Part shown: in pieces, positions 2,374 through 33,323 of the stretch
Numbering within the stretch: position 1 is the first letter of the stretch
Layout: the number at the start of each line of letters is the position of its first letter
Assembly: GCA_965240325.2 (NCBI GenBank)
Contig: OZ251250.1
Location: 496,001 to 560,000, forward strand
Reading direction: 5' to 3'
Source of the DNA: Rebecca billardiae RCC1528
Lineage: Eukaryota; Protista; Haptophyta
Length of the DNA stretch: 64,000 nt
Made by a program: the position numbers and the translations under genes
Notes under the pieces: generated by a model
Told to the model about the DNA's origin: nothing
Database searches by the model: none
What the model saw: only the letters and a program-made list of their open reading frames with translations

Positions 2374-3885
2374 ATGGTCGACCTGAAAAGCCGCAAGTGT
2401 GATCACACGGGCTGCACCACGCAGCCTCACTTCGGTCTGGCAGGCGACGCGCGCGCCAGCCGGTGCGCTGCGCACAAGCTGGCTGGCATGGTCAACGTTA
2501 CGAACCGCAAGTGCGATCACACGGGCTGCACCACGCAGCCTTCATTCGGCATGCCGGGTGACGCGCGCGCGAGCCGGTGCGCTGCGCACAAGCTGGCCGG
2601 CATGGTCGACCTGAAGAGCCCCAAGTGCGATCACACGGGCTGCATCACGCAGCCTTACTTCGGCATGCCGGGTGACGCGCGTGCCAGCCGGTGCGCTGCG
2701 CACAAGCTGGCCGGCATGGTCGACCTGAAGAACCCCAAGTGCGATCACACGGGCTGCACCACGCGGCCTCACTTCGGCATGCCGGGCGACATGCGTGCCA
2801 GCCGGTGCGCTGCGCACAAGCTGGCTGGCATGGTCAACGTTACGAACCGCAAGTGCGATCACACGGGCTGCACCAAGGAGCCTTCATTCGGCATGCCGGG
2901 TGACGCGCGCGCGAGCCGGTGCGCTGCGCACAAGCTGGCCGGCATGGTCGACCTGAAGAGCCCCAAGTGCGATCACACGGGCTGCACCACGCAGCCTTAC
3001 TTCGGCATGCCGGGTGACGCGCGTGCCAGCCGGTGCGCTGCGCACAAGCTGGCCGGCATGGTCGACCTGAAGCACCCCAAGTGCGATCACACGGGCTGCA
3101 CCGCGGGGCCTTCATTCGGCATGCCGGGTGACGCGTGGGCCAGCCGGTGCGCTGCGCACAAGCTGGCCGGCATGGTCGACCTGAAGAACCCCAAGTGCGA
3201 TCACACGGGCTGCACCACGCGGCCTTCATTCGGCATGCCGGGCGACGCGCGCGCCAGCCGGTGCGCTGCGCACAAGCTGGCCGGCATGGTCGACCTGAAG
3301 CACCCCAAGTGCGATCACACGGGCTGCACCACGCAGCCTTACTACGGCATGCCGGGTGACGCGCGTGCCAGCCGGTGCGCTGCGCACAAGCTGGCCGGCA
3401 TGGTCGACCTGAAGAGCCGCAAGTGCGATCACACGGGCTGCACCACGCAGCCTTACTTCGGCATGCCGGGTGACGCGCGTGCCAGCCGGTGCGCTGCGCA
3501 CAAGCTGGCCGGCATGCTCGACCTGAAGCACCCCAAGTGTGATCACACGGGCTGCACCACGCAGCCTGCGTTCGGCATGCCGGGTGACGCGCGCGCCAGC
3601 CGTTGCGCTGCGCACAAGCTGGCCGGCATGAAGAGCCATCGGAGTTCAGGTCGGCACAAGCGCGGGCTGCAGCAGGACATGAAGAGCCCCAACGAAGTGA
3701 CGAGCGCCGCCAAGCGACAGCGGAAGCGCGCCAGCAGCACAGCCACTGCTCCGGACGTTGTGGCAGCGCGGCGGCCGCGATCATCGCAGCTGCCGCAGCT
3801 GGTCACAGCCAGCGTCGTCTCGACGCCGTCGTGTGAACGACCCGTGGTGATGGCCAGGCGTGTGACCGGGGGGAGCCGGGCCTGA
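2374..3885 (+). CDS. EsV-1-7-like Cys/His repeat protein, copy 1 (11 repeats of C-x4-C-x16-C-x2-H, basic NLS-like C-terminal tail)
   Basis: ORF 2290-3885; first in-frame ATG at 2374 (start uncertain, an upstream exon is possible). Unit CDHTGCTTQPxFGMPGDARASRCAAHKLAGMVDLKxxK resembles the EsV-1-7 cysteine-rich motif. Tail contains KRQRKR. Confidence 0.8.
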   Translation: MVDLKSRKCDHTGCTTQPHFGLAGDARASRCAAHKLAGMVNVTNRKCDHTGCTTQPSFGMPGDARASRCAAHKLAGMVDLKSPKCDHTGCITQPYFGMPGDARASRCAAHKLAGMVDLKNPKCDHTGCTTRPHFGMPGDMRASRCAAHKLAGMVNVTNRKCDHTGCTKEPSFGMPGDARASRCAAHKLAGMVDLKSPKCDHTGCTTQPYFGMPGDARASRCAAHKLAGMVDLKHPKCDHTGCTAGPSFGMPGDAWASRCAAHKLAGMVDLKNPKCDHTGCTTRPSFGMPGDARASRCAAHKLAGMVDLKHPKCDHTGCTTQPYYGMPGDARASRCAAHKLAGMVDLKSRKCDHTGCTTQPYFGMPGDARASRCAAHKLAGMLDLKHPKCDHTGCTTQPAFGMPGDARASRCAAHKLAGMKSHRSSGRHKRGLQQDMKSPNEVTSAAKRQRKRASSTATAPDVVAARRPRSSQLPQLVTASVVSTPSCERPVVMARRVTGGSRA

Positions 3886-4574: not shown

Positions 4575-7010
4575 ATGTCCGCACTGAACGGCATCATCGT
4601 GACGCACGGCCCGAACGCGGAGCACCGCATCAACACGCTCGAGGAGTACAACTCGACGTGGGACACTTACAATCCGATGGCGGCGAAGATGATCAAGGTC
4701 AGTGACGAGCGGATGGACCTGGCGCGTGAGAACTACGCGCTGCAGCAGCGGCTGCTCGACCATCGCCACGAGCACGAGCGCCGCGAGCACGCCGAGCGCC
4801 GGGCCGCGGCGGAACGCGCGGCGGCGGCGGCGGGGGCGAGGCAGGCGCCAAGCTACGCGCAGGCTGCCTCGGCGGGCGCGGGGAGTGGTTTAGCCACTCC
4901 GGGTGGCCCGACGGCGACCGGACCGGGTTCAGGTCCGGCGGCGGGCGGCGGATCCGGAATTTCTCCGGGTCCGGCGGCCGGCACACCCGGTCCGGGTGTG
5001 GGCACAGGCGGCGCGGCAGGTGCGCCGGCTGGGACTGACGGCGCGACGCCTGTGGGCGGCGCCGGCGTCGGCGCGGCGCCTACGGGCGGCGCCGGCGGGA
5101 TCGGTGGCGCGGCGCCCGCGGGCGGCGCTGCCGTGACGCTCGATCCGCGCGCGCGCGAGCTCTACCGCCGCGAGCGCGAGACCGAGGAACAGATGTATGA
5201 GCGGCAGGCGAGCGAGCACGCCATGCTGGACATAAAGCTCCGACAGAGCGTGTTGGAGGCAGCGCCGGACGGCGACGAGGCGGACCCCGCCAAGTACGCC
5301 GGGGCGCAGTACGAGAAAGGGACGGCTTTCTTACGCACAGAGCTGCGGTCGTGGGTGACGGAGGCTGCGTGGCAGCACATCAACCGCCTCATGGAGACGC
5401 AGCCGGAGGTGCAGGAGGAGCGCGCGCGCCGGGGCGCACTTACGCCGGGGCGCGAGTTTCTGTACCTGTGGAAGACGATCCTGCGCATGCGCAAGCCCGA
5501 CGACATGCGGAAGTACATGTCGGTGCGGGCACGCTGGCATCGGACGGTCCTGCCGGACTGCGGCAAGGACGGCGTCGGCGCCCTCGAGCTCTTCCAGGTG
5601 CTACAGCACAACCACGTGCTGCTGCAGGAGCTGAGTGACGCAGCGCCAGCGGCGGAGATGCTTGCGCGGCTCATCGAGTTCATTCCGTCGGTGGGCGCGG
5701 GCATCGAGATGCGGACGCGGTACGAGTCGAAGGACTACAGGACCGTGACGAACTTCGACGTGCAGGAGCTCGTGCACGAGCTCAACGGCAAGTTCGAGGA
5801 CTGGGACTTCTCCAAGGGCAAGCGGGTTGACCGCGGCGGCCCTGGGCGCCCAGGGGCGGGTGGCCGCACGCCAGGAGGCGGCGGCGCTACCCGCGCGCAC
5901 CCAATCGACGGGCTCCGCCTGGCGCAGGCGGCGGCGGCGTCGGCGGGTGGCGGCGGCGGCGACACGACGTCGCCGGCTGGCCGTGGTGGCGGCGGCGGAG
6001 GTCGTGGCGGCGGCGGCGGCGGCACTGGCCGCGGCGCCGGCCGCGGAGGCCAGGACGACTCCGACGACGTGCACGGGCCGCGCTGCTACAAGTGCGGCGC
6101 CGTGGGGCATATCAAGCGTTACTGCCCGCAGGTGACGCAGGCTGATCGCGACTCGAACGCTGGCGATGACGCGGCGTCGACGCGGTCGGATCGCAGCCGT
6201 GGCTCACATCGGAGCGGCGGCGGCGGTGGCGGCGGCGGTGGCGGGGGCAGCACCCGCGCCGTGGTCGGTAATGGCAACGGCGGCGGCACGGTCCGCACGC
6301 AGGTCGCGTTCGCTCCCGAGCAGGGTGACGAGCCCGACGGCGCCGTTGGTGGCGACGGTGACGCTGACGCCGGATACGGCGGCGGCGCCGGCGCCGGACT
6401 CGGCTTGGCGCCTATTGGCGCGGCTATCGGCGGCAGGGCGCAGCGCGACGAGGACATCGAGATCGTCGCGGCGCGGGCGGCCGAGGCACGTGTGGCGCCG
6501 CCGGAGGACAACACGCGGGCGTTGGTGTTTGACACTGGCGCACGGAAGAACATCGCCATGGCCGAGGATTTGACGAATCTCACCCCGGTGGACGGCGCAT
6601 CATGTCAGATCGAGTGGGGGAACGGTGCGCGGGAGCGGGTCACTCACAGCGGGACCCTGGTGGTCAAGCTTGCGGCGGACGACGACAGCGACAAGGTCCT
6701 CACGCTCGAGATCGAGGCGTGGGCGTCGCGGCGCGTCACGGCGCCGCTGCTGTCGGTCGAGCACTGCGCGGACGCAGGCATCGAGTTCCACTACTCGCAG
6801 CGCGGCAACACTGCGGACTTTACGGCGCTGGGAGGCGGCGTCGTGCAGCTGCCGCGCGATTCCACGCTGCGCGCCGAGATCGTACGGCGCCAGGTGGGGC
6901 CGGACGTCGGCGATGCGCCGGCGGAGCCGCGCGCACGGCGCAGGGCGCCGGTGCGGCGTGTGGGCGCGGGGCGGGGGCGCATTGGCGCTGCGCCGCCCCC
7001 AAACGCCTAA
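4575..7010 (+). CDS. gag: Copia Gag with zinc knuckle and aspartic protease
   Basis: 811-aa ORF with CYKCGAVGHIKRYC (CCHC knuckle) and LVFDTGA protease motif. Confidence 0.9.
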   Translation: MSALNGIIVTHGPNAEHRINTLEEYNSTWDTYNPMAAKMIKVSDERMDLARENYALQQRLLDHRHEHERREHAERRAAAERAAAAAGARQAPSYAQAASAGAGSGLATPGGPTATGPGSGPAAGGGSGISPGPAAGTPGPGVGTGGAAGAPAGTDGATPVGGAGVGAAPTGGAGGIGGAAPAGGAAVTLDPRARELYRRERETEEQMYERQASEHAMLDIKLRQSVLEAAPDGDEADPAKYAGAQYEKGTAFLRTELRSWVTEAAWQHINRLMETQPEVQEERARRGALTPGREFLYLWKTILRMRKPDDMRKYMSVRARWHRTVLPDCGKDGVGALELFQVLQHNHVLLQELSDAAPAAEMLARLIEFIPSVGAGIEMRTRYESKDYRTVTNFDVQELVHELNGKFEDWDFSKGKRVDRGGPGRPGAGGRTPGGGGATRAHPIDGLRLAQAAAASAGGGGGDTTSPAGRGGGGGGRGGGGGGTGRGAGRGGQDDSDDVHGPRCYKCGAVGHIKRYCPQVTQADRDSNAGDDAASTRSDRSRGSHRSGGGGGGGGGGGSTRAVVGNGNGGGTVRTQVAFAPEQGDEPDGAVGGDGDADAGYGGGAGAGLGLAPIGAAIGGRAQRDEDIEIVAARAAEARVAPPEDNTRALVFDTGARKNIAMAEDLTNLTPVDGASCQIEWGNGARERVTHSGTLVVKLAADDDSDKVLTLEIEAWASRRVTAPLLSVEHCADAGIEFHYSQRGNTADFTALGGGVVQLPRDSTLRAEIVRRQVGPDVGDAPAEPRARRRAPVRRVGAGRGRIGAAPPPNA

Positions 7011-7027
7011 GCCCGGAACCCGCGCAG

Positions 7028-8980
7028 GTGCGAACCACAAACACAACCACTACGGTATCTGATACCACTACTACTACAGAGGCGGCGCGAGGCGCTGATC
7101 CGGCGTGGTTACGCACTTGGTCGGTTCGAACGGGCACCAATGACCAACGTCTACTCGAGCGCACGCGACGCGTGGCCGAGGGGATGGAGGGGGCGAACGC
7201 GCGGCGTGAGCCGCTCGACGAGCAGTCGGCGGCGGGCATGACGCGGCGGTCGTTCGCGGACGCGATGCCGACGGCGCACTACCCTGGGCAGGTGACGCAC
7301 GTCGACATCTTCTCTATGGCGCGCATCGACTTACCAGTTGGGGCCGATGGCGCACGTGGAGGGTATCCTCATGGGATCATATTCGTCGATGGGCATTCAC
7401 GTCGATGGCAAGTGTACGCGCTACGCAGCTTGGATGACGCCGAGGTTGGTCGGGCATTCCGCTGGTACGCGCAGTTGCTTGGAACAGGGGCCATGCACAT
7501 GTCGCATTGGGTCCTGGCGTCGGGGTGTACTATGGCGCGACGCCATATTCACACCGACGGTGGCTCGACGTTGCTGAGTACGTACGTCGAGGGTGAGCTG
7601 GCGAAGCTTGGGTTCTCGTCGACGGTCACGTCGGCGCCCGACTCGCCGAGCTCGAATGGCGTGGCGGAACGCGCTATCCGCACGCTGAAGTCGAGACTGC
7701 GCGCCACGGTCGTTGCGCGTGGAGTCTCGCGGGTCGATTGGCACTACGCGGCGTGGCACGCATGCGCGTCGCGCAATCGACTGGCGTCACGTGGTATCAT
7801 TCGTGACGATGGAGACATTGAGTGGCTCACGCCGGATGAGCTGTTCTTTGGCAAACGTCCGACGTGGAAGCATCACGTGGCGTTTGGCGCGCGCTGCCGC
7901 GTGCTGATGCTGGGCGCACGGCGCAATGCATTGGGGCAGCTGAAGCAGCGCGCACTACCCGGACGTGTCTATCTCTGGGGTGGGCACGGCGTGCAGTGGC
8001 GCGGTACATGGCGCTACGTGCTTGGGTACGTATGTCGTTTAGACGACGGACGTCTCGTTCACTCACGTGACGTACGCATCGACGAGACCGACCTGGTCGA
8101 GGGGGGGCACTCGTCGCTGGGCGCACCTGACGGTGGCGCGTACGTGGGTGATGGTGACGGCGCCGCAGTAAGCGGCGGACATCGTCCAGTCGGCGGTGAT
8201 GCCGACGGTGAGGACGAGGACGGCGACGACGGCGAGACGCCAGCCGACGCCGGGAATGACGACGCGACAGAGTTCGACGTCGGGTACGACGACGACGCAG
8301 ATGCGTCAACGTCGGGGCGCGGGCGCAGCAGCGTAGACGCGGGACAACGCGGGTGCAGCAGCGCGGGCGCACAGCCGTCGACGCCGACGCCGCAGGGCGG
8401 GCGTGGCGGGGCAGGCGCGTCGATGACGCAGCCGGGTCGGCAGGATCAGATACCGCCGACGGAATCACGGCGCGGGGCCGCAGCAGATGCTGGCGGGCCG
8501 CCGCGCGGCGCAGACGGTGACGACGGCGTGATCGAGGACGCGCCGCCGCCCGGTCTGGATATGGGACACGATCCGCTTCGCAGGGATCGGACGTCGCGCC
8601 GACGGCCGCAGCTGCTGACTGCCGTCGTCAGCGCCGCGTCGGTGTTCCAGAAGATCAACGTGAAGGTGCCGACGAACTATCGCGAGGCGATGCGGTCGGC
8701 GGAGGCGCCCCAGTGGCAGGGCGCCATGCTCGAGCACTTGGAAGGTCACAAGTTGCTCGGCACCTCGGAGGAGGTGGTGGTTCCGGAGGGCACGCGGGTG
8801 TTGCCGAGCCAGTGGGTCTTTGACGTCAAGTCGAACCCGGAGGGCGAGGTGACGCGCTTCAAGGCGCGGTCGGTGCTACTGGGGAACCTACAGCGGCCGG
8901 GGATCGACTTTCAGGAGGTCTTTGCTCCGACGATCCGGCCGGAACAAGTGCGACTACTCGTGGCGATCGCCGCTCAGCAG
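7028..8980 (+). CDS. pol: Copia Pol part 1: integrase core and RT N-terminus (-1 frame relative to gag; boundaries approximate)
   Basis: ORF 6602-9088: THVDIF, IIFVDGHSR, HIHTDGG, SNGVAERAIRTLK (DDE integrase); VPTNYREAM, WVFDVK, RFKARSV..G..QRPGIDFQEVFAP (copia RT). Confidence 0.9.
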
Positions 8981-10313
8981 GCTGGCGCGAGGGTCGACTT
9001 GGGTGCAGGCGTCGGTTGCGGCGCTGGGCATACTGTCGAAGGACGACGTCAAGGACGCGTACCTCAACTCGGAGTTGAAGCCGGATGAGCGGCCTCTCTT
9101 CTCATTCCCGCCGGGCTACGTGCCGAGCACGCAGGCGCCGCCGGGGCACAAAGTCGTGGGCCGGAGCCTGAAGGCGTATCCGGGCCTACGCCAGTCTGGG
9201 CGCGCGTGGCATCGCACGCACCGCACCCAGCTGCTCGCGCGCGGCTTCTCGGAGTGTCCGAGTGCGCCGTGCATCTACGTCAAGGAGTCGGCGCCGGGCG
9301 AGTTCATCATCGCGGGCGGCTTTGTCGACGACTTGCTGTTTCTCAACCTGACGCGCGACGCGCGCGCGGTGGAGAAGCTGGCGGCTGACCTGAAGGAACA
9401 CTACGAGATCAAGCTGAGTGAGCGGCTCGATAAGTTCCTGGGCGCCGTGTTTGAAGTTCATGACGACGGCATCCTGATGCATCTGGGGCCGTACGTCGAG
9501 AGCGTGCTTCAGCGGTTCGGTTTGAACGCGAGCACGCCGGCGCGCACGCCGGAGCCGGCGGCGCGGGCGCAGCTGAGCGACGACGACGAGGCGTTGCTGC
9601 AGCGCGCGGAGATTGAGAACTACCAGGCGATGGTGGGATGTCTCATGTTTGCGATAGTCACGGCGCGGCCGGACATCGCGCACGCGGTGAACATGCTGAC
9701 TCGACGCATGTCACGTCCGCGGGCGGTGGATCTGGTAAGTGCGAAGCGCGTGCTGCGCTACTTACGTGGATGCCCGCGATTGGGAATCTTGTTCAAGTTT
9801 GCGACAGATTCCGAGCACCCCGACCTACTTGCTTTCGCTGACTCCGATTGGGCAAGCAATCCGGTGGAGACCAAGGGCAGGTCGACGGGTGGATACATTG
9901 TGTTCTACAATGGGGCGCCGGTGTCGTGGCACAGCGGGCTGCAAGGCACAGTCTCGCTGAGCTCGACGGAGGCGGAGTACGTCGCGCTGAGCGATTGCTG
10001 CCGCGAGGTGAGCTACTTGCGGAGCATACTCGAGTCCATGCGGCAGCCGCCGCGGGGCGCGACGGAGGTGCGAGAGGACAACAAGGGGGCTATCGACCTC
10101 GTGGAGAATCCTGTGCACCACAAGCGCTCGAAGCACATCGAGATCAAGCATCATTATGTGCGCGACGCGCAGGAGGGCGGCAAGGTGAAGGTGGTCAAGG
10201 TACACACCTCACTCAACCACTCTGACATCATGACGAAGGCGACGGACGGTGCGACGTTCAAGCGGCACGTCGACGCCATCATGGTGGAGCGACACCCGAC
10301 GCGCGCGCGGTAA
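8981..10313 (+). CDS. pol: Copia Pol part 2: RT core and RNase H, separated from part 1 by a frameshift near 8980-9040
   Basis: ORF 8922-10313: DVKDAYLNSEL, YPGLRQSGRAW, FVDDLL, AFADSDWA, SSTEAEY, EDNKGAI, KHIEIKHHYVRD. Confidence 0.9.
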
Positions 10314-11353: not shown

Positions 11354-11529
11354 CATTATTCTATACATATATGATGATGATTTAACGACACAGGTAGGAC
11401 GACGCGGGTCTGGCCTGAGACCTGATTCGTCGGTGCCCGATCGTCGACACGAAGTCGGCGCTGGTGGCAGAGCATAGCCTGCACCGCGAAGTCGTAAAGC
11501 TTGACGGCGCGGCCGCCCGCGCGCGGCCT
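11354..11529 (-). mobile_element. Short SINE-like or heavily truncated LINE insertion, putative TGAGCT target duplication
   Basis: Interrupts a diverged copy of the gene-family spacer between two tgagct (11348-11353, 11530-11535). Carries a diverged version of the ...cctgtgtc(g/t)ttaaatcatagaat terminus. Paralogous copy at 30747-30954. Confidence 0.6.
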
Positions 11530-11613
11530 TGAGCTGCTGTGTCTGCTGAGCCCACGGCCGTGGAGCGACGGCGATATATACGGCGCCGAGGATACTGTAT
11601 CAAGGGGCTTACA

Positions 11614-14311: not shown

Positions 14312-15425
14312 GTCTGTCTGTCGCCGGGTCACATAAGCGCAATTCGCGTACCCACTTACGCGCTCGATAGGACAAAAGCCGCTCGTCGTTCGGTCAAAAG
14401 CCGCTCGTCGTTCGGCGGTTTGCGTACTCACATTCGCGCGAATCGCATCGGCCCATTCGTCGTGTCGCGAGTTCACACTTCACATTCACACGATCCGTCA
14501 CTTTCTCGCTAGACATTTCACGAGCAGAGGGGCGCGCTGATATTGGCACGCGGGTATCATCTTGCATTGGACTACGAGCATCGGAGCAACCGCGCCTCGC
14601 ATCGACGAGTCCCGTCCGAAGGACGACAAGGCCGAGAGCCCACGCCATTCCAAGGGTCGCCCTTGCGATTGACGTCTCGTTCGGTCGCGCGACGAGCGGC
14701 TCGCGTGCGGCGCCAAGCGAGAGACGCGGGGCGCGCGGCGGGCGCACGCGCGAGGCTGCCCACCACGCGCACGCGCGCGACCCCGCCGGCTCGGGCGACA
14801 CGCCGCTGCCTCAGCTCGAGCACGAGCGCGAGGCGTGGCGCCGGCTCGGTGGGCGGCGGACGGCTCGACCTGCACTGCGGTGCCAGCGGATGAAGCGGCA
14901 AGCCCGGCGGGCGCATACGCGCAGGTCCGCCCTCCACGCGCGAGCGCGCGACTGCGTGTTCCACGAGCTGCAGCAGGCGGCCGCGGGCTGGTCGGCGGCC
15001 GGCGAGGTCGGCGGAGTGCCGCCCGGCCCGCGTTCTCGCTTGGGCGCGGGCCACACTCTCACTCACAGCGCGGGGCGTGGTGCTGCGGACGGGCCAGTCA
15101 TTGCAGCGCGCACTCCGTGGTCAGACGTGCACACGCGCGCGCGTCGTCAGCCCCGCCGCTGCGCCCCTGTGGCGCCGTTGGCAGCGTCGGAATTCCGAGC
15201 TCGGGCTACCGGCCCGGCGTGCCATCATGCGTTTCAGAAACAGGTTTCCAGCCCAAGTTGACGCGCAGCGCCAACCCATATTTAAAAAAAAAAAACTGGT
15301 ACGTCGTACAGGGGAAGTGACGTTCGAGTCTGAAAAGCGTCGGCGTGGGTGCTCGTCAACTCGAGGCGCGCGCGACGGCGGGCGCGGCCAGGGTCGTGGT
15401 CGCCTTCCCAGCCAAGCTGGCCGGC

Positions 15426-17048
15426 ATGGTCGGCCTGAAGCACCGCAAGTGCGATCACACGGGCTGCACCACGCGGCCTTACTTCGGCATGCCGGGTGAC
15501 GCGCGTGCCAGCCGGTGCGCTGCGCACAAGCTGGCCGGCATGGTCGACCTGAAGCACCCCAAGTGCGATCACACGGGCTGCACCGCGGGGCCTTCATTCG
15601 GCATGCCGGGTGACGCGCGTGCCAGCCGGTGCGCTGCGCACAAGCTGGCCGGCATGGTCGACCTGAAGAGCCGCAAGTGCGATCACACGGGCTGCACCAC
15701 GCAGCCTGCGTTCGGCATGCCGGGTGACGCGCGTGCCAGCCGGTGCGCTGCGCACAAGCTGGCCGGCATGGTCGACCTGAAGAACCCCAAGTGCGATCAC
15801 ACGGGCTGCACCACGCGGTCTGCATTCGGCATGCCGGGCGACGCGCGCGCCAGCCGGTGCGCTGCGCACAAGCTGGCAGGCATGGTCGACCTGAAGCACC
15901 CCAAGTGCGATCACACAGGCTGCACCACGGGGCCTTCATTCGGCATGCCGGGAGACGCGCGCGCCAGCCGGTGCGCTGCGCACAAGCTGGCCGGCATGGT
16001 CGACCTGAAGCACCCTGAGTGCGATCACACGGGCTGCACCACGCAGCCTGCGTTCGGCATGCCGGGCGACGCGCGTGCCAACCGGTGCGCTGCGCACAAG
16101 CTGGCCGGCATGGTCGACCTGAACAGCCGCAAGTGCGATCACACGGGCTGCACCACGCGGCCTTACTTCGGCATGGCGGGTGACGCGCGCGCCAGCCGGT
16201 GCGCTGCGCACAAGCTGGCCGGCATGGTCGACCTGAACAGCCGCAAGTGCGATCACACGGGCTGCACCACGCGGCCTTACTTCGGCATGGCGGGTGACGC
16301 GCGCGCCAGCCGGTGCGCTGCGCACAAGCTGGCCGGCATGGTCGACCTGAAGAGCCCCAAGTGCGATCACACGGGCTGCACCACGCGGCCTTCATTCGGC
16401 ATGGCGGGTGACGCGCGTGCCAGCCGGTGCGCTGCGCACAAGCTGGCCGGCATGGTCGACCTGAAGCACCCCAAGTGCGATCACACGGGCTGCACCAAGG
16501 AGCCTTCATTCGGCATGCCGGGTGACGCGCGCGCCAGCCGGTGCGCTGCGCACAAGCTGGCAGGCATGGTCGACCTGAAGCACCCTGAGTGCGATCACAC
16601 GGGCTGCACCACGCAGCCTTACTACGGCATGCCGGGTGACGCGCGTGCCAGCCGGTGCGCTGCGCACAAGCTGGCCGGCATGGTCGACCTGAAGAACCCC
16701 AAGTGCGATCACACGGGCTGCACCACGCGGCCTTTATTCGGCATGCCGGGTGACGCGCGCGCCAGCCGTTGCTCGGCGCACAAGCTGGCCGGCATGAAGA
16801 GCCTTCGGAGTGGTGCGCACAAGCGCGGGCTGCCGCAAGACATGAAGAGCCCCAACCAAGTGACGAGCGCCGCCAAGCGACAGCGGAAGCGCGCCAGCAG
16901 CACAGCCACTGCTCCGGACGTTGTGGCAGCGCGGCGGCCGCGATCATCGCAGCTGCCGCAGCTGGTCACAGCCAGCGTCGTCTCGACGCCGTCGTGTGAA
17001 CGACCCGTGGTGATGGCCAGGCGTGTGACCGGGGGGAGCCGGGCCTGA
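15426..17048 (+). CDS. EsV-1-7-like repeat protein, copy 2 (12 repeats)
   Basis: ORF 15345-17048, first ATG 15426; tail type KSLRSGAH. Confidence 0.8.
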   Translation: MVGLKHRKCDHTGCTTRPYFGMPGDARASRCAAHKLAGMVDLKHPKCDHTGCTAGPSFGMPGDARASRCAAHKLAGMVDLKSRKCDHTGCTTQPAFGMPGDARASRCAAHKLAGMVDLKNPKCDHTGCTTRSAFGMPGDARASRCAAHKLAGMVDLKHPKCDHTGCTTGPSFGMPGDARASRCAAHKLAGMVDLKHPECDHTGCTTQPAFGMPGDARANRCAAHKLAGMVDLNSRKCDHTGCTTRPYFGMAGDARASRCAAHKLAGMVDLNSRKCDHTGCTTRPYFGMAGDARASRCAAHKLAGMVDLKSPKCDHTGCTTRPSFGMAGDARASRCAAHKLAGMVDLKHPKCDHTGCTKEPSFGMPGDARASRCAAHKLAGMVDLKHPECDHTGCTTQPYYGMPGDARASRCAAHKLAGMVDLKNPKCDHTGCTTRPLFGMPGDARASRCSAHKLAGMKSLRSGAHKRGLPQDMKSPNQVTSAAKRQRKRASSTATAPDVVAARRPRSSQLPQLVTASVVSTPSCERPVVMARRVTGGSRA

Positions 17049-17414
17049 GCAGCAGCATCACAGCTGCGTCGTCGTCAGGACGGCAAGGGCACCCGGCACC
17101 GTACTAGGTAATCTCGCCTGCCTGAGCTGTGTGCGTCTCTTAGTCTTAGTAAACTGTAGGGCTGTCATCATTTGTCAACCGTCCCTGAGTCTCTGGACTG
17201 TGATGTGACTCTTGATCACCGGTCTGACCGGAGGACTCACGGACAAGGTGAGCTGTGCGGCCGGAGCGACGGCGATATCGAGCCGATACCGTCGTACAAG
17301 GGGAAGTGACGTTCGAGTCTGAAAAGCGTCGGCGTGGGTGCTCGTCAACTCGAGGCGCGCGCGACGGCGGGCGAGGCCAGGGTCGTGGTCGGCTTCCCAG
17401 CCAAGCTGGCCGGC

Positions 17415-18356
17415 ATGGTCGGCCTGAAGAGCCGCAAGTGCGATCACACGGGCTGCACCACGCGGCCTCACTTCGGCATGCCGGGTGACGCGCGTGCCAG
17501 CCGGTGCGCTGCGCACAAGCTGGCCGGCATGGTCGACCTGAAGCACCCCAAGTGCGATCACACGGGCTGCACCACGCAGCCTTACTACGGCATGCCGGGT
17601 GACGCGCGTGCCAGCCGGTGCGCTGCGCACAAGCTGGCCGGCATGGTCGACCTGAAGCACCCCAAATGCGATCACACGGGCTGCACCACGCGGCCTCACT
17701 TCGGCATGCCGGGCGACATGCGCGCCAGGCGGTGCGCTGCGCACAAGCTGGCCGGCATGGTCGACCTGAAGCACCCCAAGTGCGATCACACGGGCTGCAC
17801 CGCGGGGCCTTCATTTGGCATGCCGGGTGACGCGCGCGCCAGCCGGTGCGCTGCGCACAAGCTGGCCGGCATGGTCGACCTGAAGCACCCCAAGTGCGAT
17901 CACACGGGCTGCACCGCGGGGCCTTCATTCGGCATGGCGGGTGACGCGCGTGCCAGCCGGTGCGCTGCGCACAAGCTGGCCGGCATGGTCGACCTGAAGA
18001 ACCCCAAGTGCGATCACACGGGCTGCACCATGCGGCCTTCATTCGGCATGGCAGGCGACGCGCGCGCCAGCCGGTGCGCTGCGCACAAGCTGGCAGGCAT
18101 GAAAAGCCATCGGAGTTCAGGTCGGCACACGCGCGGGCTGCAGCAAGACATGAAGAGCCCCAACGAAGTGACGAGTGCCGCCAAGCGACAGCGGAAGCGC
18201 GCCAGCAGCACAGCCACTGCTCCGGACGTTGTGGCAGCGCGGCGGCCGCGATCATCGCAGCTGCCGCAGCTGGTCACAGCCAGCGTCGTCTCGACGCCGT
18301 CGTGTGAACGACCCGTGGTGATGGCCAGGCGGGTGACCGGGGGGAGCCGGGCCTGA
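17415..18356 (+). CDS. EsV-1-7-like repeat protein, copy 3 (6 repeats)
   Basis: ORF 17334-18356, first ATG 17415; tail type KSHRSSGRH. Confidence 0.8.
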   Translation: MVGLKSRKCDHTGCTTRPHFGMPGDARASRCAAHKLAGMVDLKHPKCDHTGCTTQPYYGMPGDARASRCAAHKLAGMVDLKHPKCDHTGCTTRPHFGMPGDMRARRCAAHKLAGMVDLKHPKCDHTGCTAGPSFGMPGDARASRCAAHKLAGMVDLKHPKCDHTGCTAGPSFGMAGDARASRCAAHKLAGMVDLKNPKCDHTGCTMRPSFGMAGDARASRCAAHKLAGMKSHRSSGRHTRGLQQDMKSPNEVTSAAKRQRKRASSTATAPDVVAARRPRSSQLPQLVTASVVSTPSCERPVVMARRVTGGSRA

Positions 18357-18693
18357 GCAGCAGCATCACAGCTGCGTCGTCGTCAGGACGGCAAGGGCAC
18401 CCGGCACCGTAAGGTAATCTCGCCTGCCTGAGCTGTGTGCGTCTCTCAGTCTTCGTAAACTGTAGGGCTGTCATTTGTCAACCGTCCCTGAGTCTCTGGA
18501 CTCTGACTCTCACCGGAGGACTTCACGGACACGGTGCGCGGCCGGAGCGCGGCGATATCGAGGACACCGTCGTACAGGGGAAGTGACGTTCGAGTCTGAA
18601 AAGCGTCGGCGTGGCGGTGCTCGTCAACTCGAGGCGCGCGCGACGGCGGGCGCGGCCAGGGTCGTGGTCGCCTTCCCAGCCAAGCTGGCCGGC

Positions 18694-19695
18694 ATGGTCG
18701 GCCTGAAGCACCGCAAGTGCGATCACACGGGCTGCACCACGCGGCCTTACTTCGGCATGCCGGGCGACATGCGTGCCAGCCGGTGCGCTGCGCACAAGCT
18801 GGCCGGCATGGTCGACCTGAAGAGCCGCAAGTGCGATCACACGGGCTGCACCACGCAGCCTGCGTTCGGCATGCCGGGTGACGCGCGTGCCAGCCGGTGC
18901 GCTGCGCACAAGCTGGCCGGCATGGTCGACCTGAAGCACCCCAAGTGCGATCACACGGGCTGCACCACGCGGCCTTCATTCGGCATGGCGGGTGACGCGC
19001 GTGCCAGCCGGTGCGCTGCGCACAAGCTGGCCGGCATGGTCGACCTGAAGCACCCCAAGTGCGATCACACGGGCTGCACCAAGGAGCCTTCATTCGGCAT
19101 GCCGGGTGACGCGCGCGCCAGCCGGTGCGCTGCGCACAAGCTGGCAGGCATGGTCGACCTGAAGCACCCTGAGTGCGATCACACGGGCTGCACCACGCAG
19201 CCTTACTACGGCATGCCGGGTGACGCGCGTGCCAGCCGGTGCGCTGCGCACAAGCTGGCCGGCATGGTCGACCTGAAGAACCCCAAGTGCGATCACACGG
19301 GCTGCACCACGCGGCCTTTATTCGGCATGCCGGGTGACGCGCGCGCCAGCCGTTGCTCGGCGCACAAGCTGGCCGGCATGAAGAGCCTTCGGAGTGGTGC
19401 GCACAAGCGCGGGCTGCCGCAAGACATGAAGAGCCCCAACCAAGTGACGAGCGCCGCCAAGCGACAGCGGAAGCGCGCCAGCAGCACAGCCACTGCTCCG
19501 GACGTTGTGGCAGCGCGGCGGCCGCGATCATCGCAGCTGCCGCAGCTGGTCACAGCCAGCGTCGTCTCGACGCCGTCGTGTGAACGACCCGTGGTGATGG
19601 CCAGGCGTGTGACCGGGGGGAGGCGGGAGCCGGGCCTGAGCAGCAGCATCACAGCTGCGTCGTCGTCAGGACGGCAAGGGCACCCGGCACCGTAA
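18694..19695 (+). CDS. EsV-1-7-like repeat protein, copy 4 (6 repeats; 7-bp insertion near 19621 extends the C-terminus)
   Basis: ORF 18475-19695, first ATG 18694; reads gaccggggggaggcgggagccgg where other copies read gaccggggggagccgg. Confidence 0.78.
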   Translation: MVGLKHRKCDHTGCTTRPYFGMPGDMRASRCAAHKLAGMVDLKSRKCDHTGCTTQPAFGMPGDARASRCAAHKLAGMVDLKHPKCDHTGCTTRPSFGMAGDARASRCAAHKLAGMVDLKHPKCDHTGCTKEPSFGMPGDARASRCAAHKLAGMVDLKHPECDHTGCTTQPYYGMPGDARASRCAAHKLAGMVDLKNPKCDHTGCTTRPLFGMPGDARASRCSAHKLAGMKSLRSGAHKRGLPQDMKSPNQVTSAAKRQRKRASSTATAPDVVAARRPRSSQLPQLVTASVVSTPSCERPVVMARRVTGGRREPGLSSSITAASSSGRQGHPAP

Positions 19696-19993
19696 GGTAA
19701 TCTCGCCTGCCTGAGCTGTGTGCGTCTCTTAGTCTTAGTAAACTGTAGGGCTGTCATTTGTCAACGTGACCGTCCCTGAGTCTCTGGACTGACTCTCAGT
19801 CTCACCGGAGGACTTCACGGGTGGACGGTGGTGCGGCCGGAGCGCCGGCGATACCGAGGATAGTGGATACGTCGTACAGGGGAAGTGACGTTCGAGTCTG
19901 AAAAGCGTCGGCGTGGGTGCTCGTCAACTCGAGGCGCGCGCGACGGCGGGCGCGGCCAGGGTCGTGGTCGCCTTCCCAGCCAAGCTGGCCGGC

Positions 19994-21388
19994 ATGGTCG
20001 GCCTGAAGCACCGCAAGTGCGATCACACGGGCTGCACCACGCGGCCTTACTTCGGCATGCCGGGTGACGCGCGTGCCAGCCGGTGCGCTGCGCACAAGCT
20101 GGCCGGCATGGTCGACCTGAAGAGCCGCAAGTGCGATCACACGGGCTGCACCGCGGGGCCTGCGTTCGGCATGCCGGGTGACGCGCGTGCCAGCCGGTGC
20201 GCTGCGCACAAGCTGGCCGGCATGGTCGACCTGAAGAACCCCAAGTGCGATCACACGGGCTGCACCACGCGGTCTTCATTCGGCATGCCTGGCGACGCGC
20301 GCGCCAGCCGGTGCGCTGCGCACAAGCTGGCAGGCATGGTCGACCTGAAGCACCCCAAGTGCGATCACACGGGCTGCACCACGCGGCCTTCATTCGGCAT
20401 GCCGGGCGACGCGCGCGCCAGCCGGTGCGCTGCGCACAAGCTGGCCGGCATGGTCGACCTGAAGCACCCTGAGTGCGATCACACGGGCTGCACCACGCAG
20501 CCTCACTTCGGCATGCCGGGAGACGCGCGCGCCAGCCGGTGCGCTGCGCACAAGCTGGCCGGCATGGTTGACCTGAAGCACCCCGAGTGCGATCACACGG
20601 GCTGCACCACGCAGCCTCACTTCGGCATGCCGGGCGACGCGCGTGCCAGCCGGTGCGCTGCGCACAAGCTGGCCGGCATGGTCGACCTGAAGAGCCGCAA
20701 GTGCGATCACACGGGCTGCACCACGCAGCCTGCGTTCGGCATGCCGGGTGACGCGCGTGCCAGCCGGTGCGCTGCGCACAAGCTGGCCGGCATGGTCGAC
20801 CTGAAGAGCCGCAAGTGCGATCACACGGGCTGCACCACGCAGCCTGCGTTCGGCATGCCGGGCGACGCGCGTGCCAGCCGGTGCGCTGCGCACAAGCTGG
20901 CCGGCATGGTCGACCTGAAGCACCCCAAGTGCGATCACACGGGCTGCACCACGCGGCCTTCATTCGGTATGGCAGGCGACGCGCGCGCCAGCCGGTGCGC
21001 TGCGCACAAGCTGGCCGGCATGGTCGACCTGAAGAACCCCAAGTGCGATCACACGGGCTGCACCACGCGGCCTTTATTCGGCATGCCGGGTGACGCGCGC
21101 GCCAGCCGTTGCTCGGCGCACAAGCTGGCCGGCATGAAGAGCCTTCGGAGTGGTGCGCACAAGCGCGGGCTGCCGCAAGACATGAAGAGCCCCAACCAAG
21201 TGACGAGCGCCGCCAAGCGACAGCGGAAGCGCGCCAGCAGCACAGCCACTGCTCCGGACGTTGTGGCAGCGCGGCGGCCGCGATCATCGCAGCTGCCGCA
21301 GCTGGTCACAGCCAGCGTCGTCTCGACGCCGTCGTGTGAACGACCCGTGGTGATGGCCAGGCGGGTGACCGGGGGGAGCCGGGCCTGA
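19994..21388 (+). CDS. EsV-1-7-like repeat protein, copy 5 (10 repeats)
   Basis: ORF 19913-21388, first ATG 19994; tail type KSLRSGAH. Confidence 0.8.
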   Translation: MVGLKHRKCDHTGCTTRPYFGMPGDARASRCAAHKLAGMVDLKSRKCDHTGCTAGPAFGMPGDARASRCAAHKLAGMVDLKNPKCDHTGCTTRSSFGMPGDARASRCAAHKLAGMVDLKHPKCDHTGCTTRPSFGMPGDARASRCAAHKLAGMVDLKHPECDHTGCTTQPHFGMPGDARASRCAAHKLAGMVDLKHPECDHTGCTTQPHFGMPGDARASRCAAHKLAGMVDLKSRKCDHTGCTTQPAFGMPGDARASRCAAHKLAGMVDLKSRKCDHTGCTTQPAFGMPGDARASRCAAHKLAGMVDLKHPKCDHTGCTTRPSFGMAGDARASRCAAHKLAGMVDLKNPKCDHTGCTTRPLFGMPGDARASRCSAHKLAGMKSLRSGAHKRGLPQDMKSPNQVTSAAKRQRKRASSTATAPDVVAARRPRSSQLPQLVTASVVSTPSCERPVVMARRVTGGSRA

Positions 21389-21543: not shown

Positions 21544-22723
21544 AATTCTATGATTTAAAGACACAGGCACGAGGGCGCAGCTCTCCTGATTCGTCTGTCG
21601 AAGTACTGAATGGAGTTAGTGGAGGATGTCGCTGGAGCGCGTTGGCCGCGGGTGAGGGAGTCGTCGTAACCGATGCTGATCACACGGTCACTGAGGTAGT
21701 AGGCGCCCGGGGATGCCGCTGTTTTGCAGTCGTCGTCGGCCTTGGTCATCATGTAGTTGCCCGCGTCGTCGTCGTCCCGAGGCTGTTCAAGTTGATGCCG
21801 TAGTGCGGGTAGTGGATGTGGTCGCCCGGGCCGGTGTGCGCGGCCTAGTGGCCTTGCCGAGTTGAGGGAGTAGTCGCCCTTGCCGTTGAGGAAGTCGTCG
21901 TCCTTGCCGTTGAGGAAGTCGTCGCCCTGGCCGCAGAGGAAGTCGTCGCCCTTGCCGTTGAGGAAGTCGTCGTCCTGGCCGCTGAGGGTGCCTGCGCTGC
22001 CCAACCGGGCGCGTCTGGCGCGCCAGCGCCGCGCGCGGCTCTACGCCAGTGACGGCGGCACGGCGGCAGCCAGGTCACGGGGGGGGTCGGCGAGGGACGC
22101 GGTGCGAGCCTGCTTGGCCGGCTTGGCGTCGCTCCCGCCAGCGGAGGAGGGCCCATCCTCCTCCGCCGGCGTGGACGGCTCGGTCGCCGCGCGCTTGCCG
22201 GCTGCCGCGGCGCCGGGGGGCAGGACCAGGCGGTAGTTGGACTCCCCGAGCGCCGGCCTGGCCTGTTGCACCTCGGGCCCGTCCGACGGCGCGGCCGCGG
22301 TTGGCGGCTGGGGTGGCGGGATGGCATCGTCGGAACCCTCCCCCTCGGGCTCCTCCGCCTCCGGGCCGGCGGGGTCCGCCGCCTGTTGGTCGGCCGGCTG
22401 AGGAGCAGGGCGGCGCGCAGCGGCGGGCGGCGCGGGCGGCACAGGCGGCGCGGGCGGCACGCCCCACAGGTTGTGTGGGACGCGGGCGGCGCCGGCGATG
22501 CGGCGGCTCGGCTTGAGCGGCGCGAAGAAGATGGGGTGCTCGGGGTCGATGGGCATGAAACGGAGGCGGAGGAAGATCAGGTTCACACCGCCGGAGTAGA
22601 TGTTGGTCTCGACGTGCTCACCGTTGGTCACGTACTTGTTGATGTCGGGCACGATCTGCTCGTAGAGGGCCCTGTGGAACTGCACGAGCGTCATCGTGGG
22701 GCTAACCGGGAGCGTGAGGGACA
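21544..22723 (-). mobile_element. 5'-truncated retroelement-like insertion with GGACT target-site duplication
   Basis: Flanked by ggact at 21539-21543 and 22724-22728. 21540-21598 is the exact reverse complement of 14256-14314, the LINE 3' end. Contains an ORF remnant ending at 22041 (SLTLPVSPTMTLVQFHRALYEQ...). Confidence 0.7.
21852..21988. repeat. 24-bp minisatellite (ccttgccgttgaggaagtcgtcgc), about 5.5 copies
   Basis: Direct reading; appears as (G/D)DDFLNGK repeats in ORF 21555-22004. Confidence 0.85.
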
Positions 22724-29256: not shown

Positions 29257-30426
29257 ATGGTCGGCCTGAAGAGCCGCAAGTGCGATCACACGGGCTGCAC
29301 CACGCAGCCTTACTTCGGCATGCCGGGCGACGCGCGTGCGAGCCGGTGCGCTGCGCACAAGCTGACAGGCATGGTCGACCTGAAGAGCCGCAAGTGCGAT
29401 CACACGGGCTGCACCGCGCGGCCTTCATTCGGCATGCCGGGTGACGCGCGTGCCAATCGGTGCGCTGCGCACAAGCTGGCCGGCATGGTCGACCTGAAGC
29501 ACCCCAAGTGCGATCACACGGGCTGCACCACGCGGCCTTACTTCGGCATGCCGGGTGACGCGCGTGCCAGCCGGTGCGCTGCGCACAAGCTGGCCGGCAT
29601 GGTCGACCTGAAGAGCCCCAAGTGCGATCACACGGGCTGCACCGCGGGGCCTTCATTCGGCATGCCGGGTGACGCGCGTGCCAACCGGTGCGCTGCGCAC
29701 AAGCTGGCCGGCATGGTCGACCTGAAGAGCCGCAAGTGCGATCACACGGGCTGCACCACGCAGCCTTACTTCGGCATGCCGGGTGACGCGCGTGCCAGCC
29801 GGTGCGCTGCGCACAAGCTGGCCGGCATGGTCGACCTGAAGAGCCCCAAGTGTGATCATGCCAGCTGCACCACGGGGCCTTCATTCGGCATGCCGGGCGA
29901 CGCGCGCGCCAGCCGGTGCGCTGCGCACAAGCTGGCAGGCATGGTCGACCTGAAGCACCCTGAGTGCGATCACACGGGCTGCACCACGCAGCCTTACTAC
30001 GGCATGCCGGGTGACGCGCGCGCCAGCCGGTGCGCTGCGCACAAGCTGGCCGGCATGGTCGACCTGAAGAGCCGCAAGTGCGATCACACGGGCTGCACCA
30101 CGCAGCCTGCGTTCGGCATGCCGGGTGACGCGCGCGCCAGCCGGTGCGCTGCGCACAAGCTGGCCGGCATGAAGAGCCATCGGAGTTCAGGTCGGCACAA
30201 GCGCGGGCTGCAGCAGGACATGAAGAGCCCCAACGAAGTGACGAGCGCCGCCAAGCGACAGCGGAAGCGCGCCAGCAGCACAGCCACTGCTCCGGACGTT
30301 GTGGCAGCGCGGCGGCCGCGATCATCGCAGCTGCCGCAGCTGGTCACAGCCAGCGTCGTCTCGACGCCGTCGTGTGAACGACCCGTGGTGATGGCCAGGC
30401 GTGTGACCGGGGGGAGCCGGGCCTGA
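29257..30426 (+). CDS. EsV-1-7-like repeat protein, copy 6 (8 repeats)
   Basis: ORF 29176-30426, first ATG 29257; tail and 3' flank most like copy 1. Confidence 0.8.
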   Translation: MVGLKSRKCDHTGCTTQPYFGMPGDARASRCAAHKLTGMVDLKSRKCDHTGCTARPSFGMPGDARANRCAAHKLAGMVDLKHPKCDHTGCTTRPYFGMPGDARASRCAAHKLAGMVDLKSPKCDHTGCTAGPSFGMPGDARANRCAAHKLAGMVDLKSRKCDHTGCTTQPYFGMPGDARASRCAAHKLAGMVDLKSPKCDHASCTTGPSFGMPGDARASRCAAHKLAGMVDLKHPECDHTGCTTQPYYGMPGDARASRCAAHKLAGMVDLKSRKCDHTGCTTQPAFGMPGDARASRCAAHKLAGMKSHRSSGRHKRGLQQDMKSPNEVTSAAKRQRKRASSTATAPDVVAARRPRSSQLPQLVTASVVSTPSCERPVVMARRVTGGSRA

Positions 30427-31592: not shown

Positions 31593-32453
31593 TTCGAGTC
31601 CGGGCGCGGCCGCCGCTGCCGCGGGCGCTGCGAGGTTTGAGTCCGGGTCGGGCCTTCCCACGTCGCGCCGCCGCGCGAGAACCCGACGTAGGCCGCGATG
31701 ACGTCCCCGCGCGCGCGGCGCGTGGTGCGCCGAGCAAGAGCACGTGTACTGCCGCCCTCTGCCGCCGCTCGTCACCTCATCTCACCCGCGTTGCTCAGCA
31801 CGGGCGCCGTGCGACGCCGGCGACGTGACTCAGCTTGCACGCGCCGGATGTGAAGCTGCACCCAGAGGCCGAGCTGCGCTCTAGCCCCTCGTGCGCCCGG
31901 TGGGCAGCGTGCACATGGATGTTATGCGTTTTCCCTGCGCTCAGTGGTCTGTCTCGAGGCGTCTCTAGAGTGAGTTGTTGGCTCTGCTACACGACTGCGT
32001 TTGAATTGCGTGTGTCGACGCACTCTGTCATGCCCGTGCGTGGGCAGTGTACGTCCTCAGGTTGCGGGCGCACGCGCGCGCCTGGTCGCAGGAAGCACAG
32101 GCCTACCCGACACCAACGATTTTGGGTCCTGCACGGTCATCAGGTGGGTGCAGTGCACGTGCGTGCGCGGTGCGAGTTGCATCCAAGCCGCGACGCCTTT
32201 GCGCGCACTGCTCGCGTTGGCGGAGAGAGGCGAGGAGCGACCGCCGACGCGTACCCGGTGGCTACGTATGACCTTGGTCGACTACCAGGCTCGTCGCGTC
32301 CGCGCGCACGGGCCGTATTCGTCCGCACCGACGCTCGCGAGGTACGCTCGCAGCGGCACCGGGGGCACGGTGCCGCCCTTCAGGGGTTTGAGTCATAAGC
32401 CGCACCGGCAGGCGCCAACCGGTTTGCCGGCTTGCCGCTCAAGTCCTTGGGCG

Positions 32454-33323
32454 ATGGCGCCCGCCGCGCACGCCCTCCGCGCGTACAGAGTGGCGACGCC
32501 GGCTGCGGCGGGGCTGCCCGCGGGTGCGGCGACGGAGGTGCTCCTCCTCGCAGCGTCGTCCCTCCCGGCCAGGCGCCACGTCCTCTTCTTCCCCGGCGAC
32601 GCGCAGATGCGTCGAACCGAAATGGAAGCCGACGTGCGCCACGGCACGTTCGAATTTTCGCACCACTCGCTCGACGACACGCTCCCGCGGCTGCAGGCGG
32701 CGTTCGGCGCGGACGCGCACGTGTGGGCGGTGCGCCCGCTGCGCATGGTCTACCAGTTCGCGTGCTACCAGCAGTTCGCGCGCGTCAGCCTCATCGGCGC
32801 TGCGCAGTACGACGGCGGGACGGCGCGCGCGGCCGACGGCATCAGTGCGCTGCTGGAGGGCGCGCTCGCGCAGGCGAGCGGCGAGGGCGCGGTGGACGGC
32901 GCGGCGCGCGAGCTGCCGCTGGTGCTCGCGGGCTTCTCCAAGGGTTGCGTCGTGCTCAACCAGCTGCTCGCCGAGCTCGGCGCGGGCGCGGCGGGCGCGC
33001 GCGCGCTGTTCACGCGCGCCGAGGCGGCGCACTGGATCGACGGCGGCAACGGCTCGGAGCGCGGCGCGCTGTACGCCGAGGCGGGGGCGCTCGACGCGCT
33101 GGCGGAGGTCGCGGCGCGCACGCGCCTCGCCGTGCACGTGCACTCCTCGCCGTACATGCTCGACTCGCCCAAGGCGCCGTGGGTGCGCGCCGAGCGCGAC
33201 GCGCTAGTCTCGGGCCTCCGCGCGCGCGGCGTGGCAGTCCGGGCGCTCGACTATTTCGAGGACGAGGAGCCGAGCCTCGAGCGGCACTTCGAGGTGCTCG
33301 GCGCGCTGGACGTGGAGGGCTGA
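32454..33323 (+). CDS. UPF0565 / C2orf69-like protein
   Basis: VLFFPGD, FACYQQF, LAGFSKGCVVLNQLLAEL, HWIDGG, VHVHSSPY and SLERHFEVL are motifs I recognise from this family; start codon chosen by eye. Confidence 0.85.
   Translation: MAPAAHALRAYRVATPAAAGLPAGAATEVLLLAASSLPARRHVLFFPGDAQMRRTEMEADVRHGTFEFSHHSLDDTLPRLQAAFGADAHVWAVRPLRMVYQFACYQQFARVSLIGAAQYDGGTARAADGISALLEGALAQASGEGAVDGAARELPLVLAGFSKGCVVLNQLLAELGAGAAGARALFTRAEAAHWIDGGNGSERGALYAEAGALDALAEVAARTRLAVHVHSSPYMLDSPKAPWVRAERDALVSGLRARGVAVRALDYFEDEEPSLERHFEVLGALDVEG

Follow-up and report, generated by a model that had tools for sequence, protein, structure and literature searches.

The stretch of DNA analysed here, hereafter the window, comprises 64,000 nucleotides (nt) of Rebecca billardiae RCC1528 (contig OZ251250.1, positions 496,001 to 560,000 of the forward strand) and contains six genes, which we call A to F, each encoding a tandem array of Cys/His modules of the EsV-1-7 family. 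The DNA backbone of these modules is homogenised over the whole cluster and a few codons carry an excess of non-synonymous diversity, at positions that are also the most variable ones in related arrays of giant viruses, where the array is in most cases fused to a restriction-endonuclease-like domain. A sequence-only reading had taken the span 15426-21388 for a single array of 53 units. In fact, four intact genes duplicated in tandem (B, C, D and E) lie in the span, with 34 units between them, and 53 is the total of the six genes: a six-frame scan of the window for C-x4-C-x16-C-x2-H returned 53 units in six arrays, all on the + strand, every one of them matching the motif at an exact period of 114 nt. 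Tandem Repeats Finder places the 114-nt units across 15413-21136, split into three high-identity blocks. The features of the cluster are listed below, with the E-value of each gene against the Pfam model PF19114 and the range of each array from its first Cys.

2374..3885, + strand: gene A, putative coding sequence, 11 units and a tail, outside the span 15426-21388; E 8.6e-151; array A, 2398-3615
15270..15425, + strand: upstream block of about 150 nt, conserved and present ahead of each of the genes B to F, without an in-frame ATG
15426..17048, + strand: gene B, putative coding sequence of 540 residues, 12 units and an 89-residue basic tail; E 1e-164; array B, 15450-16781, with first-Cys codons at 15450-16704
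16782..17048, + strand: C-terminal tail of gene B, basic, non-repeated, containing KRQRKR, with equivalents in all six genes
17415..18356, + strand: gene C, putative coding sequence of 313 residues, 6 units and a 90-residue tail; E 5.7e-79; array C, 17439-18086
18694..19695, + strand: gene D, putative coding sequence of 333 residues, 6 units; E 6e-84; array D, 18718-19365
19994..21388, + strand: gene E, putative coding sequence of 464 residues, 10 units and a tail; E 2.4e-138; array E, 20018-21121
29257..30426, + strand: gene F, putative coding sequence, 8 units and a tail, outside the span 15426-21388; E 8.3e-108; array F, 29281-30156

The span 15426-21388 contains four + strand open frames in three reading frames (15345-17048, 17334-18356, 18475-19695 and 19913-21388), and all six frames of the cluster run uninterrupted from the inferred ATG to the stop, 15426 being the inferred ATG of gene B and 21388 the stop of gene E. 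The start codons were placed by inference, since no in-frame ATG lies upstream: the 27-72 open codons that precede the first unit are devoid of ATG, and the first one to occur is the Met of the first KLAGM linker, whose context is ctggccggcATGG in all six genes. The upstream 150 nt, which are 84-98% identical among genes B to F, are presumed to comprise the promoter and the 5' leader. The KRQRKR tail is likely, from its residues, to be a nuclear-localisation signal, and the proteins of the window have isoelectric points of 9.6-10. The tail of gene E equals that of gene B in protein sequence. Towards the end of its tail, gene D (18694-19695) has an indel through which the stop present in the five other genes is lost and the protein is longer by about 20 residues. 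A single gene with introns extending over the four arrays is ruled out, as each array possesses its own upstream block, ATG context, tail and stop. The antisense open reading frames (e.g. 15121-16947, minus strand) have no Pfam match and are by-products of the GC-rich repeats.

The sequence-only reading treated the repeats without a family name. All six open reading frames match PF19114 (EsV-1-7) with 260-534 bits, against a gathering score of 25 bits, over 6-12 stretches each, and the genes are new members of this described family (PF19114 / IPR043822). The four Cys/His residues, putative zinc ligands, are invariant in the aligned units, and 38 residues is also the commonest unit spacing among 120 database homologues. 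In Pfam, none of the six open reading frames matches zf-C2H2, SET or KRAB; zf-CCCH (PF00642 type, C-x7-8-C-x5-C-x3-H) gives no match either, its spacing being different, nor do the transcription activator-like (TAL) repeats, the units here being Cys/His modules of 38 residues that are almost devoid of helix in the model. The EsV-1-7 family is greatly expanded in brown algae, where it forms tandem clusters and ranks among the largest gene families; it includes the brown-algal developmental regulator IMM (Ectocarpus IMMEDIATE UPRIGHT) and is also present in giant viruses. The domain that precedes the repeats at the N-terminus of IMM was not found in the window genes, which are therefore not IMMEDIATE UPRIGHT orthologues. 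The family is said to have been founded in a paper by Macaisne and colleagues in 2017. A word-index search with the repeats of P0055, aimed at long fusion proteins, returned only 9 proteins, which are brown-algal.

For the analysis of variation, the 53 units were aligned without gaps as 12 linker codons and 26 core codons, and positions are numbered as the alignment index minus 12, so that the first Cys is position 1. The residue sets given by the sequence-only reading are confirmed (T/A/K/M at position 8, Q/R/G/E at 9, S/Y/A/H/L at 11 and F/Y at 12), as are the triads preceding the first Cys (SRK, HPK, NPK, SPK, HPE, HRK and NRK). Its statement that variation is concentrated in a few codons per unit is borne out both by entropy and by differences per base. 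The amino-acid entropy over the 53 units reaches 2.08 bits at position 11, 1.70 at 9, 1.50 at -3, 0.99 at 8 and 0.94 at -2, and 16 of the 38 positions are invariant. At the DNA level, 48 of 114 sites are variable, including 11 of the 15 bases of the five variable codons (-3, -2, 8, 9 and 11), and the mean pairwise difference per base is 0.298 in these 15 hypervariable bases versus 0.043 in the other 99, i.e. about sevenfold. Nine units, drawn from genes A, B, D, E and F, do not differ at all in the 99-nt backbone, but exhibit six hypervariable combinations differing by up to 8 bases. The near-invariance that had been claimed even for silent sites holds in part: the two stretches quoted in its support are exact in 48 of 53 units each, but silent sites do vary (silent diversity about 0.10), and two of them are polymorphic at intermediate frequency (GGT/GGC 36:15 and CGT/CGC 28:24).

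The hypervariable sites assort almost freely, all 8 of the 8 combinations being seen for -2 with 9 and 12 of 15 for -3 with 11. The order of the unit types differs in all six genes, the first and last units being common to B, D and E; Gly at -6 is confined to first units and Ser at 24 to the last units of genes B, D and E. In units A2 and A5 (2476-2589 and 2818-2931), the linker reads MVNVTNRK in place of MVDLK..K and comprises four base changes that are linked; it looks like a minor second type of backbone that has not been homogenised away.

Backbone distances are the same within arrays (0.044) and between arrays (0.043), the non-repeated gene tails are 96.6-100% identical in DNA, and units identical in DNA are shared between genes (B3 = D2 = E7, B12 = D6 = E10, A9 = C2, A10 = F5). 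These three observations point to exchange or recent duplication across the whole cluster. Gene D shares four units with gene B (D2 = B3, D4 = B10, D5 = B11 and D6 = B12), and the adjacent units B7 and B8 are identical to each other. Concerted evolution, which had been proposed by analogy with PRDM9, is thus retained for the backbone; it acts, however, over a cluster of six genes and not inside one minisatellite. A locus from elsewhere, L006:1001-3779, contains two adjacent EsV-1-7 array genes (592 residues, and 586 residues running off the contig end), so tandem duplication also occurs outside the organism of the window.

Nei-Gojobori estimates give a non-synonymous divergence (dN) of 0.45 for the five variable codons; in the other 33 codons, dN is 0.026 and the synonymous divergence (dS) 0.108, with a dN/dS ratio (omega) of 0.24. 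In order to avoid a post hoc choice of codons, positions -3, 9 and 11 were fixed beforehand from other organisms. The non-synonymous diversity (pN) at these three positions is 0.41 in the window, compared with a silent diversity (pS) of 0.10 in the other 35 codons, a ratio of 4.1 (3.3-5.4 by bootstrap over units) which becomes 4.7 within genes B-E alone. Likewise, the first and second positions of the variable codons have a diversity of 0.367 versus 0.075 for third positions elsewhere (p 1e-4). The dN/dS check suggested in the sequence-only reading, now run, gives elevated values at the variable positions; the excess of non-synonymous diversity there, about four times the silent diversity, is demonstrated, and the diversifying selection that had been proposed is supported. 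Its second check, on hypermutability of CpG (cytosine-guanine) dinucleotides, shows that CpG does not explain most of the variation. At position 9, transitions at CpG could generate R/Q, and at position 8 T/A and T/M, but no more; what is seen at -3, -2 and 11 is out of their reach, as is the C/G change at 9, and the codons at position 11 differ by 2-3 bases. CpG mutation explains a minority of the changes, and the observed/expected CpG ratio of the window is 1.22, without depletion.

The same positions stand out across the family. In the 12 most homogenised arrays among the 120 database homologues, the most variable positions are 9, 11 and -3. The units of the window are about 90% identical versus 50-77% in most other members. 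A viral set was assembled with a degenerate DNA pattern for C-x2-H-K-x2-G-M-V-D-V, which yielded 120 giant-virus contigs (L007-L126) with 123 repeat open reading frames. In 70 distinct arrays from these viruses, the within-array entropy is highest at 11 (1.91), followed by 9 (1.75) and -3 (1.66); in the 34 arrays with a unit identity of at least 60%, the values are 1.76, 1.56 and 1.44 for 11, 9 and -3, the next position reaching 1.08. The viral residue alphabets match those of the window, with S/N/H at -3, R/Q (plus I) at 9 and T/S/N/V at 11. In the viral arrays without saturation of silent divergence (pS <0.25), 17 in number, the ratio of pN at -3, 9 and 11 to pS is 1.6-4.6 throughout, and the omega of their remaining codons 0.3-0.7. 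In an earlier set of five more diverged arrays from outside the window the ratio is only 0.9-2.5, because their silent sites are almost saturated. The units do not fall into a few discrete 'letters': the three positions are combinatorial, with 412 triplets in 969 units.

In the dominant viral architecture, the array begins at residues 1-3 and a conserved domain of about 166 residues occupies the C-terminus. When aligned (alignment A3), this domain shows the invariant residues R-P-D, D, E-x-D-E-x-Q-H and R-x-N-P-D. Its AlphaFold model is confident, with a predicted local distance difference test score (pLDDT) of 88.7 and a predicted template modelling score (pTM) of 0.83, and the top 50 matches of a fold search in the PDB are all PD-(D/E)XK nucleases, with McrC as the best (E 5.7e-4, probability 1.0) and with Hjc resolvases, Bax1, Can1, BstEII, PspGI and a protein of 'restriction endonuclease-like fold' among the others. 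A structure search against viral models gave matches that include proteins named 'Endonuclease' and one named 'DNA primase'. One member of the domain family matches the Hjc Pfam model, and a PDB-sequence search with the domain gave no match. It is a candidate new family, since Pfam, PHROGs and NCBIfam have no model for it.

The A3 profile detects the domain in 108 of the 123 viral repeat open reading frames (88%), most of the others ending at a contig end, and in 73 of the 120 database homologues, including the closest relatives of the window genes; it finds none in the named eukaryotic proteins (Effrenium, Ectocarpus, Coccomyxa, Scytosiphon and Laminaria). Among 1.84 billion representative proteins, the profile matches 6966 clusters at 50% identity (4650 of them with E <=1e-10), always at the C-terminus. 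Out of the best 149 matches (P0143-P0291), 104 have 1-11 EsV-1-7 units ahead of the domain; in proteins lacking them, the N-terminal slot is occupied by classical C2H2 fingers, Bro-N, a transposase helix-turn-helix (HTH) or other zinc fingers. P0229 (438 residues) thus associates seven classical C2H2 fingers, spaced by 28 residues, with the same nuclease domain, and P0005 (L003:549-2057) associates six EsV-1-7 units with a different, Vsr-like nuclease of motif VDGY...FHGDFWHGNP. Both look like natural array-nuclease chimeras. As the repeats are fused to a nuclease that elsewhere pairs with C2H2 arrays, they are most likely a modular DNA-targeting domain. No description of code-like variable positions or of nuclease fusions in the EsV-1-7 family was found in the literature searched, to which both the variable triad shared across the family and the combination of array and nuclease appear to be new.

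An AlphaFold model of four units, based on a 77-row alignment, is of good confidence (pLDDT 86.5), though elongated (pTM 0.54), with little regular structure. Residues F12-G13 and R22 form a bridge, A24-H26 a helix of one turn, and the V-D of the next linker a further bridge. On our reading of this model, the unit would be laid out as a finger of the treble-clef type, in which the first two ligands belong to a knuckle and the last two start a short helix. The weak fold matches of the repeat in the PDB (nsp13 zinc domain, zf-GRF, LIM, B-box, GATA and PHD) are at chance level. The variable positions 9 and 11 are interleaved with P10 and F12, which are conserved, a pattern suggesting that the segment is extended and has 9 and 11 facing the same way. 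Position -3 sits on the opposite flank of the zinc knuckle.

The explanation that we favour, with a confidence only slightly above even, is that the cluster consists of six paralogues, young or homogenised, whose variable residues are under selection and whose arrays are modular, sequence-specific, nuclear DNA-binding proteins. Each gene would start at the Met of its first linker and encode 6-12 CCCH zinc modules of 38 residues and a basic tail of 90 residues. Unequal crossing-over and gene conversion would hold the 99-nt backbone near-identical throughout the cluster, and selection would keep positions -3, 9 and 11, and in this lineage also 8 and -2, different between units, as well as the order of the unit types different between genes. 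Each unit would form a small zinc-knuckle finger, whose recognition patch would be provided by the residues flanking the knuckle (-3 before Cys1; 8, 9 and 11 after Cys6), and the array would read a long DNA site unit by unit, in the manner of C2H2 finger arrays or TAL effector repeats. In giant viruses, the arrays would aim the C-terminal PD-(D/E)XK nuclease; the algal genes would be nuclease-free derivatives or relatives acting as sequence-specific nuclear DNA-binding proteins. P0035, the most similar nuclease-free homologue (61% identity), possesses repeats followed by a KRQRR-type signal and a low-complexity tail, a layout that is the same as that of the window genes and that, by analogy, resembles a transcription factor. 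A broader proposal, which we put forward tentatively and a little below even confidence, is that EsV-1-7 arrays constitute an unrecognised natural system of modular DNA recognition, with specificity residing in -3, 9 and 11, used in viruses for the aiming of nucleases and adopted, without the nuclease, by algae such as this haptophyte for sequence-specific nuclear regulators including IMM.

Several points weigh against our explanation. The literature consulted gives the biochemical function of EsV-1-7 proteins as unknown, and zinc and DNA binding are putative for every one of them. The gene models are predictions made from the DNA. Codon bias in a GC-rich genome may depress silent diversity and thereby inflate the ratio, the units and the viral arrays are related and are not phylogenetically independent samples, and other lineages show no particular variability at positions 8 and -2. 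The repeat model has no solved structural relative (best Foldseek E 0.85), nor does the repeat have a sequence relative in the PDB. As for the nuclease domain, the E-values of its fold search are modest, it has no match in Pfam, PHROGs or NCBIfam, and a six-frame search of the window with the A3 profile finds none, so that the argument from the fusions reaches the window genes through the homology of the repeats alone.

The excess of non-synonymous changes on a homogenised backbone would fit any recognition surface. The arrays could be scaffolds binding proteins or other ligands, as ankyrin or leucine-rich repeats do, with a patch that recognises fast-evolving proteins, for instance in a host-virus conflict; the occurrence of the family both in giant viruses and in their algal hosts, its undefined biochemistry and the lack of a nuclease in the window genes all agree with such a role. 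We nevertheless hold it to be unlikely, because the large majority of the viral arrays are joined to the PD-(D/E)XK nuclease and a second type of nuclease has been fused independently, because C2H2 fingers, Bro-N or HTH take the place of the array in other proteins, and because the variable alphabets are polar and hydrogen-bonding (S/N/H, R/Q, S/T/N) and the proteins basic, with a tail resembling a nuclear signal. Could the arrays read RNA instead, with one unit per nucleotide or per few nucleotides, like pentatricopeptide (PPR) and Pumilio (PUF) repeats or CCCH fingers? Many CCCH fingers bind RNA, the ligand set of the units is CCCH and their period of 38 residues is close to those of PPR (35) and PUF (36); moreover, some PD-(D/E)XK enzymes cut RNA and cap-snatching endonucleases figure among the weak fold matches. 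This reading appears quite improbable to us, since C-x4-C-x16-C-x2-H departs from the RNA-binding C-x8-C-x5-C-x3-H and the units match no zf-CCCH model in Pfam, since the nuclease fused to the arrays has its best fold matches among enzymes acting on DNA (McrC, Hjc and restriction enzymes), and since the partner modules found in the slot of the array are DNA binders.

It could also be argued that diversity is not selected at all, and that the variable codons, in a repeat amplified not long ago, are simply unconstrained, or else hypermutable because of a hot spot such as CpG deamination. The initial choice of the five codons was made with the data in view, and the R/Q alternation at 9, those of T/A and T/M at 8 and the two common silent polymorphisms fit CpG transitions. 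However, neutral sites in a homogenised unit are expected to be near the pS of 0.10, a level well below that observed at the prefixed positions; the changes at -3, -2 and 11 and that of C/G at 9 lie outside the CpG spectrum in a window that is not depleted in CpG, and unrelated viral arrays vary at the same positions and with the same alphabets. This neutral account is already largely refuted and we consider it very improbable. Mutagenesis by a diversity-generating retroelement, for which a copia reverse transcriptase is found nearby, is ruled out, as the changes are not adenine-specific, a property that likewise speaks against the neutral account.

Our explanation, that of modular DNA-binding arrays, is best situated by comparison with known systems. 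With the EsV-1-7 proteins, including IMM and the phaeovirus protein EsV-1-7, the window genes share the motif, the 38-residue period, the multi-repeat arrays without any other Pfam domain, the clustering in tandem and the link to giant viruses; they differ by their haptophyte host, by far more homogenised units and by the absence of an N-terminal domain. The C2H2 arrays of PRDM9 and KRAB proteins are, like those of the window, coding minisatellites of zinc modules homogenised at the DNA level, with dN above dS at a few positions and with a number and an order of units that vary between copies. In the window, by contrast, the finger type is CCCH, the variable residues flank the zinc knuckle and are not on a recognition helix, SET and KRAB are absent, homogenisation extends over six genes, and variation is between paralogues and not between alleles. 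TAL effector repeats resemble the units in being near-identical tandem repeats which vary at few residues and are used combinatorially, without any relation in sequence or fold: the units are 38-residue, putatively zinc-dependent modules instead of 34-residue helical ones, with 3-5 variable positions instead of two, and a residue-to-base code comparable to that of the TAL repeat-variable diresidues (RVD) would be putative for them. Finally, the viral relatives recall zinc-finger, homing and restriction nucleases by their N-terminal modular array and their C-terminal restriction-endonuclease-like domain, for which cleavage is predicted; the window genes differ from zinc-finger nucleases in that they are devoid of a nuclease.

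The variable triad, the viral nuclease fusions and the presence of C2H2 fingers in the same slot make the function of the family directly testable, and the arrays of the window represent the cleanest natural case, because they are homogenised so far that almost only the candidate specificity residues differ. Could such arrays be the means by which IMM-type regulators act? If so, the viral proteins would be natural counterparts of the engineered zinc-finger or TAL nucleases and would form a very large class of site-specific nucleases of giant viruses, extending over the 6966 clusters for which Pfam has no model, and the repeats could offer a new programmable scaffold for DNA binding.

As regards the surroundings of the cluster, the window is haptophyte nuclear DNA close to Pavlovophyceae: the best named relatives of a C2orf69 homologue at 32001-33323 are those of Pavlovales sp. 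CCMP2436 (58% identity) and Diacronema lutheri (54%). A transposable element, which is context and no part of the repeat system, lies in the interval from gene A to gene B.

4575..10313, + strand: Ty1/copia-type retrotransposon, with zf-CCHC and RVT_2 on three overlapping open reading frames in two frames

The element is probably frameshifted, since it is read as three overlapping open reading frames in two frames. A 682-codon open frame at 11501-13549 (+), situated between this element and gene B, has no Pfam match, and just 3' of gene E there is a 24-nt tandem repeat (21852-21987; 5.6 copies, 86% match). The G+C content of the window ranges from 59 to 80%, with blocks of 78-80% at 44000-54000 and 62000-64000 versus 59-73% in the remainder. 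The first of these blocks overlaps a DEAD-box helicase with an MrfA zinc-binding domain (42776-47984, minus strand) and an open reading frame with beta-propeller and DEX1-like matches (49951-51957).

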